This document shows, one piece after another, positions 47,033 to 50,360 of a stretch of DNA of 57,802 bases. The stretch's first letter is position 1; every line of letters starts with the position of its first letter. The stretch comes from Macrostomum lignano. Taxonomy: Eukaryota. Position numbers and translations under genes: made by a program. The notes below the pieces were generated by a model, which saw only the letters and a list, made by a program, of their open reading frames with translations, was not told the origin of the DNA and ran no database searches. The stretch covers positions 1 through 57,802 of the forward strand of contig NIVC01002000.1 in assembly GCA_002269645.1 (NCBI GenBank). The letters run 5' to 3'.

Positions 47033-49231
47033 TTATTGGGAGCCAGGAGGCTCTGTAAATTTCGTTGCCGTGTAAATGCGGGAGCCTGGTTTATTTTGTA
47101 GTTTATCAAAGTTTTTAGCAATCTCGTTGGCGAGCCAGACCGTAGATGGGTGAAAAGGAAGGACCATTGGGATGGGTCGGAGAAGATGATTGTCGACCCT
47201 GATGTTCGTACCTGGCGGTTTGTCAGTCCCCAGTTTTTTAATCCAGATTTCTTCCCTTAGTTCGATTTTGTTGTTATTAAGAACTTGTTCGATAGCAATG
47301 GAGACAAAGTTTGCAATCGAGTGATTGGGGGTGAGAAAATGCTCTGACCCCGAAGTTACGACTCTCCTGTTAATATTTGACCTGTGCTGGTTCATTCTAT
47401 CTCTCATTGTTCTTCTAGTCATCCCTACATAGAAGATTTTCCCAGGGTGGCACTGGTTGCAGGAGATGCCATAGATGATGTTCTTGGAGCCACAGGACAG
47501 GCTCTGAGAGATTAAAAAACCGGAAGCCGGTTTCAGTCCCTGGGCGGAGAGAGCAGGCGGTGAGTGAGTGCAGCATTTGCAGCGGGATGACCCACAGGGA
47601 TGGAACCCTTTGGGAAGCAGACCCAGATTGGTCGTTGGTCCTGCAGTCCAGTTCATAAGTATGAGGACATCCTTTTTGCAGTTTCTAAGAAAAATCTTCG
47701 AGTAGCCTAATTGCTTGAGTTCCGATTTTAAAGAATTGAAAGCATCGTTGAAAGACTTGTAGTCATCACAGATACGAGCGTACCGAAGGATTTGGGATTT
47801 TACTACCCCCTTGAAGGTGTGTGACGGATGGAAGGACTGTCGGTGCAACAATCTATGAGTGTCTGTTTCTTTTGAAAACAATTGTGTTGTGAAGCGGTTT
47901 TCAGCTTTCCTGATGGTCATGTCAAGGAAACTGACCTCAGTTGATGAGGAGCTGACGGTGAGTTTGATGTTGGGGTTGATTGAATTTAGGTGTACAACAA
48001 ATTCTGTCAGAGTTTCAGCCGGGTGGTCCCAGTGAATGAAGATATCATCTATGTACCTAAAATAGATGTTCGGCTTATAAAGAGCAGTTCTCAGGGCAGT
48101 TTCCTCCCAGAGGCTCATGAAGAGACAGGCATAGCTGGGCGCAAATATGCGCCCCATGGCTGTACCTCTAAGTTGTAGGAAAATCATTTTGTCAAATTCG
48201 AAGTCATTCCTGTACAAACATAGTTCCAGTAGCTTTATTATCTCAGCATCCGGTCTAATGGGATCCGGGTATCGGTTAAAGAATTCCTGGATCGCTGCAA
48301 TGCCCTGATCTATTGGGATCATGGAGTACAGACTCTGGACATCACAGGTTGCCAGAGTCGAACCTTCCGTGCAGCTTTTATCCATAAGGTGTGCCTTGAA
48401 GTCATAGGAGTCCTTAATGAAAGTGGGTTGCGCTTGGGCAATCGGTTTTAGAAAGAAGTCTATGTACTTTTCTGCCCCAATTGCTTCAGAACTACATCCG
48501 CTCACAATAGGTCTGCCTGCTGGGACCCGAAAGGGGATCAGCCAGGTGGCCGGGTCCTTGTGAATTTTTGGGAGCAGGTAGAAATGCCGGGGACGGAAGT
48601 TCTCTCCGGGACAAAGAAATGCACACTGTTTCTTAGATATGAACTTTCTGTTACATAAATTGAGGAAGATCCCCCTAATAAGTTCCGCAGTCACGGGTTG
48701 CAATGGCTGGTCCAGCTGTTGATAGGCATCAGTGTCAAACAGTTGGTTGTAGGCTGCAAATTCGTAGTCCTTAGGGTGCATGATGACCACTGCGTTGCCT
48801 TTGTCCACCTTTTTTATAAGGACGGAGCTGTTTCGCTTGAGCCTCTGAATCGCCCTGGTCTCTGGTGCCTCTAGGTTGCCTTTGATCTGTCCCGTTGTCA
48901 AATTCTCTACCAGATTTTGGTTCTCAAGTACCAGCAAGTTGCACTCATCCCTTCTAAGTCTGAGGGGAACCTCCTTCCCTGATTTCCCGGTGAAGGGGGG
49001 CGGGCTGGTATTGGCGAGACCCCTCTTTTTGAAAAAGTCTTTCCAGAAAAGTTTACGATGAAATTCCGTCACGCAGTTCCTCAACTCATCGAAATCAAGG
49101 GCTTGGGTTGGGATAAAATTGAGTCCCTTATCTAGCAGCCTCGTCTCAGACTCGGAGAGTTTGAAGGTGGGGTGTAGATTTAAAATGTTGCCTTCCAGTT
49201 TGGGAGGCCTACAGTAGTCAGCTAGTTTAAA
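47033..49231 (-). CDS. Penelope-like element ORF2: RT + Cys linker + GIY-YIG endonuclease (Neptune-type), uninterrupted
   Basis: NILNL...LLDKGLNFIP N-terminal region, DKGNAVVIM, FYLLPKIHK, GRPIVS, DVQSLY, GTAMG, YFRYIDDIF, FLDM, CGSSRCKCC linker, NIIYGISC...YVGMTRR. No ATG before the DKG motif. Confidence 0.95.
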   Translation of the reverse strand, partial: FKLADYCRPPKLEGNILNLHPTFKLSESETRLLDKGLNFIPTQALDFDELRNCVTEFHRKLFWKDFFKKRGLANTSPPPFTGKSGKEVPLRLRRDECNLLVLENQNLVENLTTGQIKGNLEAPETRAIQRLKRNSSVLIKKVDKGNAVVIMHPKDYEFAAYNQLFDTDAYQQLDQPLQPVTAELIRGIFLNLCNRKFISKKQCAFLCPGENFRPRHFYLLPKIHKDPATWLIPFRVPAGRPIVSGCSSEAIGAEKYIDFFLKPIAQAQPTFIKDSYDFKAHLMDKSCTEGSTLATCDVQSLYSMIPIDQGIAAIQEFFNRYPDPIRPDAEIIKLLELCLYRNDFEFDKMIFLQLRGTAMGRIFAPSYACLFMSLWEETALRTALYKPNIYFRYIDDIFIHWDHPAETLTEFVVHLNSINPNIKLTVSSSSTEVSFLDMTIRKAENRFTTQLFSKETDTHRLLHRQSFHPSHTFKGVVKSQILRYARICDDYKSFNDAFNSLKSELKQLGYSKIFLRNCKKDVLILMNWTAGPTTNLGLLPKGFHPCGSSRCKCCTHSPPALSAQGLKPASGFLISQSLSCGSKNIIYGISCNQCHPGKIFYVGMTRRTMRDRMNQHRSNINRRVVTSGSEHFLTPNHSIANFVSIAIEQVLNNNKIELREEIWIKKLGTDKPPGTNIRVDNHLLRPIPMVLPFHPSTVWLANEIAKNFDKLQNKPGSRIYTATKFTEPPGSQ

Positions 49232-50360
49232 GTTCTCAGCCAGGAAGCCAGCGCCAGTATAAAGTCCGGCGCTGAGAAGGATACAATTGGTTTAAGAGGA
49301 GGAGAGGCAATAAGAGTAATAGGTGAGAGTTTCTTACTCAGAGATTGAGTCAATTCTTCACCGCTGGCAAAGGGCGGAACGAGAAGGATCTTACGTGTCA
49401 GACTGTCTGCTCTCAGTAGATCGATAGCCTCAGAGAGCGACTCTCGCCAGTGGTCTGTGCTGAGCAGCTCGTCCGGCAGGACCAGCACCGTTGACTGAGC
49501 GCATTGCCGGTTCCGCAGGGCAGCCGACCTCAGTAGAGATGGTAAGGCTGACAGTGAGTACTCATGTACCTCTGTAATTGCCGGCAGTTTGAGGCCCTCG
49601 AAAGGCTTTGGGCAGAGTACCAGGTTCCGGCAGTCCCTGCTGATGATGAGCGAAACAGGTTGCTCAAAGGTGCTGGGTGAGTCATTCAGATGCGGCCTGT
49701 GGCGTTCCGGACCACCAGGGGAGTCTTCAGAGTCCGGCGATGGTAAGCGGCGTTTGGCAGGTGAAGCAGGCAGTCCCACCCGTGGAAGAGGCGGGGTCAC
49801 AAAGAGGTCGTCAGCTGCCGACGTACAGCCGTTCTCAGGTGAGGCGACTTCGGTGGTTCCGCCTGCCGCCGGATTGCCGTCCGAAGCCGCAACCGCAGCC
49901 GCTGAGGGGTCGTTGCTGATCGTCGCATCGGCGCTCGCTGCCACGTCCCCGATGGTCGTCGCGCCGCCGTCCACTACCGAGTCGGCGTTGGTCTCCGTGC
50001 TCGTGCTTGCCGTGGGCTCATTGCTAGATGCTGCGATCGTGCTGGCTGTCGTGGTGTCGTTGTTGGAGCAGACGATCTCTGGGATCCTACGATGTTCGGC
50101 AGATTGGGCGCTCTCGTCGAGATCGACTGGTGCCATGCTTGCAGTCAGAGGGACTGCGGTGTTGGGAGTGGCTGTCTTGGTGGCACTGGGTGCAGATGGG
50201 GCCAGGGAAGCCCCGGTGGCACCGGTGTTGGGATCTTCGTGAGTCCAGCGGAAGGTCAAGTTGAATCGGCGGCCACGTTTGTGGTGTTGCGGGGGAATTC
50301 GATGAAAAAAGTTGGCCTGACAGTCGCCTGACATGGTCAGAAGACTGCCATGAAATAGAT
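49222..50360 (-). CDS. Upstream ORF1: AlkB/2OG-Fe(II) oxygenase C-terminal motif, S/T/A-rich linker, alpha/beta C-terminal domain
   Basis: FHGSLLTMSGDCQANFFHRIP...RRFNLTFRW (50355-50245) matches ALKBH2/3-type 'L.HGSLL.M...tq..w.H.vP.....RiNLTFR'. The N-half (HxD) is missing. Confidence 0.75.

Follow-up and report, generated by a model that had tools for sequence, protein, structure and literature searches.

A remnant of an ALKBH3-like AlkB domain in the first open reading frame of a Neptune-like Penelope-like element from Macrostomum lignano, and its fuller relatives

The question raised by contig NIVC01002000.1 of the flatworm Macrostomum lignano (assembly GCA_002269645.1) is whether an AlkB-type oxygenase domain found directly upstream of a reverse transcriptase (RT) belongs to a Penelope-like element (PLE) and what it may do for that element. 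The whole stretch of DNA that was analysed (positions 1 to 57,802) is referred to here as the window. We identify the locus as a copy of a Neptune-like PLE with two open reading frames (ORFs), truncated at the 5' end and preceded by the short fragment of an earlier copy and a (CT)n microsatellite (Table 1). Taken as a whole, we consider it likely that this is a two-ORF PLE family whose ALKBH3-like AlkB domain would demethylate the RNA template or cDNA of the element itself.

The frame of ORF2 is open from position 49291 to the stop at 47033 and is intact across 752 codons. ORF2 has no ATG, and its first TTG is at 49084. Pfam matches were obtained for RVT_1 (E 8.5e-6) and for GIY-YIG (PF01541, E 2.3e-4, 21.8 bits against a cut-off of 22.6 bits), which agrees with the preliminary description of this DNA, where an uninterrupted RT/GIY-YIG ORF had been reported beside ORF1. 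A total of 1639 PLE-type homologues were identified at E<=1e-10, and the best of them carry PF28514, PF26215, PF00078, and PF01541. Both the RT motifs, including YIDDIF, and the endonuclease motifs (IYGISC...YVG...R..H...E..W...N) are invariant in the ORF2 alignment. By these similarities, the predicted product of ORF2 is that of an endonuclease-bearing PLE, namely a PLE-type RT with a fused C-terminal GIY-YIG endonuclease. The linker between the two domains contains a zinc-finger-like Cys motif, HPCGSSRCKCCTH, whose Cys columns are invariant, and fish proteins are among the homologues. The element can be termed Neptune-like by this motif and by the literature on esterase ORF1s, the tree that was built having no named Neptune or Nematis references.

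ORF1 and ORF2 overlap by 70 nucleotides (nt), and ORF2 is in the -1 frame. The ORF1 remnant begins ...LFHGSLLTMSGDCQANFFHRIPPQHHKRGRRFNLTFRWTHE. It had been described as an ORF of about 380 codons that opens with the AlkB C-terminal motif and overlaps the RT ORF on the same strand, and both its length (Table 1) and its opening were found as described. The remnant matches positions 146-194 of the 194 positions in the profile of PF13532, the AlkB-type oxygenases that depend on Fe(II) and 2-oxoglutarate (2OG) (E 3.5e-6, 27.8 bits), and this score is under the 31.2-bit cut-off because the remnant is a fragment. The distal Fe-ligand His (FFHRIP) and the 2OG-binding motif RxNLTFR (as RFNLTFR) are both present, as had been stated. 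HxD and NxY are absent, thus the full set of AlkB residues (HxD...H, NxY, RxxxxxR) does not occur in the window copy. The earlier view that this copy is 5'-truncated and lacks the HxD half is also correct, and the remnant starts at the junction with (CT)n. The window copy cannot supply a demethylase because the start of ORF1, the N-terminal module (N-module), and most of AlkB including the HxD Fe ligands are missing.

Fuller copies of the family exist in M. lignano as judged from protein gene models, because P0001 and P0390 are near-identical to the remnant and carry the missing half. P0001 was the sole ORF1 relative found in the search with window ORF1. It is identical to the start of the remnant at 84 of 85 residues and extends upstream through WHADDE, which is the HxD motif. 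P0390, a gene model of 1309 amino acids (aa) in the same 90% cluster as P0001, consists of the N-module (LLLDKLLRCYHH...CKL), AlkB with WHADDE, the same linker, and the C-terminal module (C-module) ending LRTLN. Both proteins are about 99% identical to window ORF1. About 700 unrelated residues are also fused to the PLE ORF1 in P0390, which is probably a faulty gene model. The M. lignano proteins P0001, P0390, P0243-P0246, P0388, and P0389 are catalogued as 'Fe2OG dioxygenase domain-containing' or hypothetical (UniProt/NCBI). The full-length ORF1 of the family is predicted to consist of a helical N-module (LDxxLRxxHH...FxPAF...CKL), a complete AlkB domain, and a C-module ending ...LN.

The closest RTs elsewhere are 46-53% identical to window ORF2, and the contigs of the top four were inspected. 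These four lineages (L001, L003, L004/L006, and L005) come from four independent sources, namely three Logan projects and NCBI assembly GCA_029980145.1. In all of them, PF13532 scores higher than the gathering threshold (E 5e-24 to 5e-32) in an ORF that lies on the same strand as the RT and immediately upstream of it. The consistent linkage of AlkB to this RT that had been put forward for checking is thus observed, since every recovered RT lineage with at least 46% identity has a full AlkB ORF1 upstream. Copies of this RT without the upstream ORF, or an unrelated gene as the source of AlkB, were also considered, and neither was encountered. AlkB was found in 0 of 80 more distant PLE loci (26-47% identity) in a metagenome scan with the RT alignment. 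The RT phylogeny that had been called for was built by neighbour joining (NJ) from 36 RTs, and the five AlkB-bearing elements form one clade in 100 of 100 bootstraps. The sister of this clade is L011, whose ORF1 has no AlkB. From these sequences, we conclude that there was a single gain of AlkB, at the base of a PLE subclade, and that AlkB was kept with all catalytic residues while the RT diverged to about 46-53% identity, because the AlkB-bearing RTs are monophyletic and both the distant PLE loci and the sister L011 are devoid of AlkB. L004 and L006, L001 and L002, and L007-L010 were obtained from different sequencing runs and are identical in DNA over 2-5 kb. Such identical contigs fit high-copy or expressed, very young elements, with one species per project.

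The two ORFs of the element are joined by a putative frameshift site. Window ORF1 ends ...ACU UUA AAC UAG, and the -1 frame runs into the N-terminus of the RT. In all five AlkB lineages, including the window, the RT is in the -1 frame and an in-phase U_UUA_AAC precedes the ORF1 stop by 0-4 codons. In L004/L006, the -1 frame opens exactly at the heptamer. Both an in-phase X_XXY_YYZ heptamer and a downstream ORF in the -1 frame, which are expected of a -1 frameshift signal, are present. Among L001-L059 and the window, 35 loci (the window included) combine an ORF of 150 aa or more upstream with an RT in the -1 frame. UUUAAAC is in phase in 31 of the 35, and the remaining four have AAAUUUA, UUUUUUA, or AAAUUUC. 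The ORF1 proteins nearly all end ...LN because the in-phase UUUAAAC encodes their terminus. The chance of an in-phase TTTAAAC in the last five codons is estimated to be about 3 in 10,000 per lineage. Hairpins were predicted 4-12 nt 3' of the slip site in most loci by folding without pseudoknots, the distance expected for a stimulatory hairpin or pseudoknot being 5-9 nt. ORF2 is probably made by -1 frameshifting at this predicted site, because ORF1 ends in an in-phase U_UUA_AAC in every AlkB lineage.

It had also been stated that endonuclease-bearing PLEs usually have a single ORF. This does not apply to the present clade, in which the 35 related loci have a long ORF1. Two ORFs with a frameshift between them are general in the PLE clade and in part already documented, and they are not a peculiarity of the window, because the 35 loci share this layout and because a frameshift with a pseudoknot has been reported as one way in which a PLE ORF1 can be set apart (Craig et al., 2021, Fig. 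1 legend; PMC8557442).

The layout also bears on whether the AlkB fragment is simply an exon of a host ALKBH gene beside an unrelated PLE. The window has an AlkB fragment only, and the name given by UniProt to the M. lignano relatives, 'Fe2OG dioxygenase domain-containing protein', would suit a host gene. However, five diverged lineages, drawn from independent assemblies, have this architecture and this frameshift heptamer in common. In addition, the stop of ORF1 lies within the RT frame, and the remnant begins exactly at the 5'-truncation junction with (CT)n. Chance adjacency of this kind, or an artefact of assembly or annotation, is given almost no weight.

AlkB was also identified in long interspersed nuclear elements (LINEs), which were found at the top of an exhaustive AlkB profile search. 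In P0123 (L007-L010), which is a LINE-type ORF1 with CCHC knuckles, AlkB forms the N-terminal part, and the ORF2 that comes next encodes an APE endonuclease. P0247 (L091:1752-7556) is an AlkB ORF followed by an ORF2 with Exo_endo_phos_2 and RVT_1, and L091 is from SRR31628392, the same sample as the AlkB-bearing PLE L001. M. lignano contig NIVC01002892.1 has two tandem copies (L093:10001-15545 and 16454-21142) of an AlkB ORF (P0246/P0389) with a LINE ORF2. P0243-P0245 and P0388 constitute a further M. lignano family with AlkB in the LINE ORF1. There are thus at least three or four AlkB-LINE families, two of them in M. lignano, and their ORF1s have the complete AlkB first and are of RRM-like or CCHC-knuckle type. 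On sequence evidence, AlkB is a recurrent accessory domain of PLE and LINE ORF1s in these hosts.

The AlkB domains of the PLE lineages are 36-52% identical between lineages, which is similar to the RT, and the linkers that flank them are unalignable. Every PLE and LINE AlkB examined, the window copy excepted, keeps NxY, HxD, the distal His, and RxNLTFR, and the full catalytic set is present in L001, L003, L004, L005, and P0390. The best match among solved structures is human ALKBH3 (PDB 2iuw and 8jnr, E 9e-29 over the whole domain), and ALKBH2 is next (3e-15), with no convincing match to any other solved structure. E. coli AlkB, FTO, and ALKBH5 were not recovered among solved structures at E<=1e-3. 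In large protein databases, the nearest relatives outside transposable elements (TEs) are bacterial AlkBs of about 200 aa with 40-50% identity, and invertebrate ALKBH3-like proteins such as that from Argiope bruennichi are also near. By similarity, the domain is classed as ALKBH3-like. It resembles human ALKBH3 in NxY, HxD(D)E, the distal His, and RxNLTFR. Human ALKBH3 is a stand-alone cellular repair enzyme whereas the AlkB of the element sits in ORF1, and the bacterial AlkBs of 200 aa are about equally similar.

The ORF1s of the sister PLEs share the N-module and have a clear C-terminal SGNH/GDSL-like module (ILGDSNLSRI...SYPGA...GINxR...IHWT...HLN). L011, L014, L054, and others exhibit GDSN...GxN...HW and the same ...LN / UUUAAAC end, and the SGNH module of L054 matches Pfam at E 0.0036. 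The middle slot of ORF1 is empty in L011, L017, L023, L024, L027-29, and L033. The middle slot is occupied by NADAR in L054 (L054:2163-4388; PF08719, E 1.2e-18) and, by BLASTP, in L014/15/18, L016, L022, L036, and L057. The middle slot is occupied by AlkB only in the subclade of the window. In the alignments, the C-module of window ORF1 sits where the sister ORF1s have the SGNH esterase. It reads ...IISRDCRN..., and the SGNH blocks GDS(N), G, GxN, and DxxH were not found in it. The W...LN end of the C-module is preserved across the AlkB subclade, whereas PDS, PDH, PDL, or RDC stands in place of the GDS motif, which has been lost. Comparison of the AlkB-clade C-module with 14 PLE SGNH modules using hhalign gave a probability of 0.2 and thus no similarity. 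The AlphaFold single-sequence model of the window C-module has a mean confidence (pLDDT) of 50 and is too poor for use. The linker region of ORF1 cannot be aligned between lineages.

Such a variable slot (none, NADAR, or AlkB) could hold a passenger. AlkB may have been captured by template switching and be useless for transposition, or it may merely bind nucleic acid without catalysis. Retroelements are known to swap accessory ORFs (PMC5408684), and the C-module that adjoins AlkB has itself lost the SGNH GDS motif, both of which would agree with a passenger. Nevertheless, AlkB is kept in all five lineages though their RTs have diverged to about 50% identity, all Fe- and 2OG-binding residues are intact while the flanking linkers are randomised, and independent LINE families keep the same residues. 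We regard a passenger as very improbable.

The element can be compared with several known systems. Neptune-like PLEs with an esterase ORF1 are reportedly also the subject of work by Arkhipova from 2006. Esterase ORF1s in Neptune-like PLEs have been published (Schneider et al., 2013, PMC3905857; Rodriguez et al., 2017, PMC5408684). Those PLEs and the window element have in common the RT with a C-terminal GIY-YIG, the Cys-rich linker, the pseudo-long terminal repeat (pseudo-LTR) or partial tandem arrangement, 5' truncation, and an ORF1 that is separated by a frameshift. In contrast to those PLEs, the subclade of the window has an ALKBH3-like AlkB between the N-module and the C-module, its C-module has no SGNH motifs, and no hammerhead ribozyme was detected with Rfam. 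The scan covered positions 45500-51500 and returned zero families at E<=1, hammerhead ribozymes included. A hammerhead ribozyme in the pseudo-LTR or 3' region is frequent in PLEs but not universal.

NADAR domains have been reported in Ectocarpus Gypsy elements and oyster Tx1 LINEs (PMC12477816), and no report of NADAR in PLEs was found in the literature. The likeness is that a nucleic-acid-processing enzyme has been recruited into retrotransposon proteins, and the sister PLEs hold NADAR in the ORF1 slot of AlkB. NADAR is, however, a different enzyme family from AlkB and is absent from the window element.

The only TE precedent found for AlkB is that of orchid Ty3/Gypsy LTR retrotransposons, which carry an AlkB N6-methyladenosine (m6A) demethylase domain (PMC9289625). 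In those elements too, an AlkB-family domain is fixed in the coding region of a retrotransposon. The orchid element is a plant LTR element with a recent acquisition and reported m6A demethylase activity, whereas the elements in this work are animal PLEs and LINEs with a domain similar to ALKBH3 and bacterial AlkB and with an old acquisition (RT divergence of about 50%).

AlkB domains also occur in the replicases of plant RNA viruses (Flexiviridae and Closteroviridae). These are likewise selfish RNA-templated replicons with their own AlkB, which is thought to clean methyl lesions from the single-stranded RNA genome. In the viruses, AlkB lies within the polyprotein of the RNA-dependent RNA polymerase, whereas the PLE is an animal retrotransposon that makes DNA from RNA and has AlkB in its ORF1 protein. 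The preliminary description knew of no AlkB in a GIY-YIG PLE. Full-text literature searches, with subscription journals and Repbase outside their coverage, likewise returned no report of AlkB in PLEs or LINEs. We have found no earlier description of AlkB beside an RT in an animal retroelement, and the two-ORF layout itself was already known.

The function that we favour for the domain is repair of the template of the element. ALKBH3 demethylates 1-methyladenosine (m1A) and 3-methylcytidine (m3C) in single-stranded DNA (ssDNA) and RNA, and both modifications block reverse transcriptases. A -1 frameshift would yield an ORF1-ORF2 fusion, and AlkB would be carried into the ribonucleoprotein (RNP) that contains the RT. 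There, AlkB would oxidatively strip m1A and m3C from the single-stranded RNA template of the element and/or its nascent cDNA, since such methylations block Watson-Crick pairing and would otherwise stall reverse transcription. The same logic has been proposed for the AlkB domains of plant RNA viruses. A self-encoded demethylase that acts on the RNA or cDNA of the element is a plausible idea and fits the ALKBH3-like character of the domain.

The same domain might instead erase a mark such as m6A from the RNA of the element, which would thereby evade decay or silencing by host readers. The only published retrotransposon AlkB that was found, that of the orchid Ty3/Gypsy elements, is an m6A demethylase (PMC9289625), and host m6A pathways are known to modulate L1 (PMC7873242). 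The conserved catalytic residues would suit any demethylase activity. On the other hand, the domain resembles ALKBH3, ALKBH2, and bacterial AlkBs of about 200 aa, and the main m6A erasers of animals, FTO and ALKBH5, are not among the structure matches at that threshold (E<=1e-3). Epitranscriptomic escape is therefore considered unlikely.

Repair at the level of DNA, where AlkB would remove 3-methylcytosine (3mC) or 1-methyladenine (1mA) from cDNA or integrated DNA, is rated somewhat lower still. The lesions could be, for example, off-target products of host DNA methyltransferases (DNMTs). M. lignano is reported to retain DNMT1, DNMT3, and ALKB2, and DNMTs make 3mC as a by-product (reviewed in PMC9246332). 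ALKBH2 and ALKBH3 both repair 3mC in DNA, and ALKBH2 is the second-best structural relative of the domain. However, the likeness to ALKBH3, which acts on ssDNA and RNA, is far above the likeness to ALKBH2, which acts on double-stranded DNA. The fusion to an RNP-forming ORF1 and, via the predicted frameshift, to the RT also favours RNA or nascent ssDNA over chromatin.

Several points weigh against demethylation of the template by an ALKBH3-like domain, the reading that we prefer. The window copy has only 39 residues of AlkB. The NJ tree of AlkB domains gives no bootstrap support for any TE grouping, and orthology to ALKBH3 is not established. The presumed substrates, m1A and m3C, are taken solely from similarity to ALKBH3. 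P0001 and P0390 are devoid of about 15-18 residues (...TRTFELK to ...LLTMSGD) that are present in all other lineages, and this is due to either a damaged copy or a mis-spliced gene model. RNA structure downstream of the slip site is not significant (z -0.85 and -1.11 for the window, mean z -0.93 over 25 loci). The ratio of nonsynonymous to synonymous substitutions (dN/dS) on ORF1 is uninformative, the duplicate contigs (L004/L006, L001/L002, and L007-L010) being identical in DNA.

The features of the locus and the AlkB-bearing relatives are listed in Table 1.

Table 1. Features of the PLE locus in the window and AlkB-bearing elements from other sources.
Feature	Position or source	Strand	Description
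Upstream 5'-truncated partial copy of the same PLE	50476..50935	minus	460 nt: ORF2 residues 622-683 with a frameshift, and 3' untranslated region (UTR)
(CT)n microsatellite	about 50362..50484	minus	Sequence read; repeat family D1
ORF1 remnant	50361-49222	minus	379 codons
AlkB remnant	50236..50352	minus	39 aa, HGSLLTMSGDCQANFFHRIPPQHHKRGRRFNLTFRWTHE; Pfam PF13532
ORF1 linker	49678..50235	minus	Low complexity, Ala/Ser/Thr/Pro-rich; from translation
ORF1 C-module	49225..49677	minus	About 150 aa, predicted alpha/beta, ends ...WLRTLN
U_UUA_AAC slippery heptamer	49225..49231	minus	In phase with ORF1; ORF1 stop UAG (49224-49222) next
ORF2	47033..49291	minus	PLE RT, Cys-rich linker (HPCGSSRCKCCTH), and GIY-YIG endonuclease; uninterrupted
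3' UTR, main copy	46774..47032	minus	259 nt; abuts 5'-truncated LINE fragment
L001/L002 (PLE)	Logan SRR31628392 / SRR31628425		ORF1 1067 aa
L003 (PLE)	Logan ERR14788467		ORF1 956 aa
L004/L006 (PLE)	Logan SRR19430222 / SRR19193851		ORF1 1012 aa
L005 (PLE)	NCBI GCA_029980145.1		ORF1 514 aa and N-module in another frame
L007 (LINE)	ORF1 837-3110		ORF2 from 3112

The upstream fragment consists of the final 62 codons of ORF2, placed at 50935-50739 by tblastn, and the 3' UTR. Positions 46774-47220 and 50476-50934 form a direct repeat with 92.5% identity over 453 nt by blastn (88-98% per segment), and the direct-repeat families D5-D8 of the repeat search are spaced about 3703-3714 nt apart. The upstream fragment acts as a pseudo-LTR that matches the 3' end of the element itself. 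The locus thus exhibits the PLE hallmark of a pseudo-LTR or partial tandem copy together with 5' truncation. Between the upstream fragment, whose 3' end reads ...GAAAAGCCTCT, and the point at which the main copy is 5'-truncated lies the (CT)n microsatellite. The end of the 3' UTR of the main copy is given as ...GAAAAGCCTCT and as ...ATGAATGGTGAAAAGCCTCT. The ORF listing has an ORF of 426 aa at 49222..50502, which includes 47 leading residues outside ORF1 proper. Those residues are fortuitous, the ATG lying in the 3' UTR of the upstream fragment and (CT)n being read as (SL)n. The main copy is probably young, because its ORF1 remnant is about 99% identical to P0390. The upstream fragment differs from the main copy by 2-12%, varying by segment, and this divergence suggests a separate, earlier insertion.

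Other observations were made around the element. The main PLE copy and the adjoining 5'-truncated LINE fragment (46773 to about 45741) lie between two (CT)n tracts, at 45630-45740 and 50362-50484 (minus strand). In the upstream fragment, the 3' end of the PLE runs into (CT)n, whereas in the main copy it runs into only two CT units and then the LINE. This suggests that (CT)n is a tail of the element or its preferred target, which was later hit by the LINE. On either side of the PLE, at 46051-46773 and 51421-52495 (minus strand), is a LINE fragment with an RNase H domain (PF00075, E about 1e-6). A single LINE split by the PLE was considered from the RNase H ORFs at 46051-46920 and 51421-52068. 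This was rejected because both contain the same part of RNase H at 47% aa identity and are separate copies. A minisatellite at 52590-53300 has units of 23 and 29 nt (GGGTGACTGAAGAATCGG...) in more than 20 copies, and a lone unit is found at 51255-51301. An ORF of 411 aa at 42995-44230 (minus strand) matches the amiloride-sensitive sodium channel family (PF00858, E 5.8e-30) and probably represents either an exon of a host gene or a gene without introns. GC content across positions 1-57802 is as low as about 31% at 30-40 kb and as high as about 60% at 1-6 kb and 20-24 kb, and these swings suggest a mosaic of repeats and unique sequence.

A broader proposal may be made tentatively, and we stop a little short of even confidence in it. 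An ALKBH3-like demethylase may have been built into the RNA-coating ORF1 of a Neptune-like PLE clade and of no fewer than three or four LINE families from Macrostomum and related hosts. The enzyme would travel with the RT by means of the frameshift fusion and would repair or de-mark the template in cis. ORF1 may then be a general slot for de-modification enzymes (AlkB and NADAR) that is shared between PLEs and LINEs by domain exchange. TE-borne AlkB that is annotated as ordinary protein could confound surveys that relate ALKB repair to DNA methylation (for context, see PMC9246332). Because the flatworm is a tractable model, the idea is directly open to experiment. Should the domain prove active, these elements would be the first animal retrotransposons shown to have their own base-demethylation enzyme, and it would follow that reverse transcription in vivo is limited by methyl lesions or marks, on the RNA template or the cDNA, to a degree that selects for a built-in eraser.

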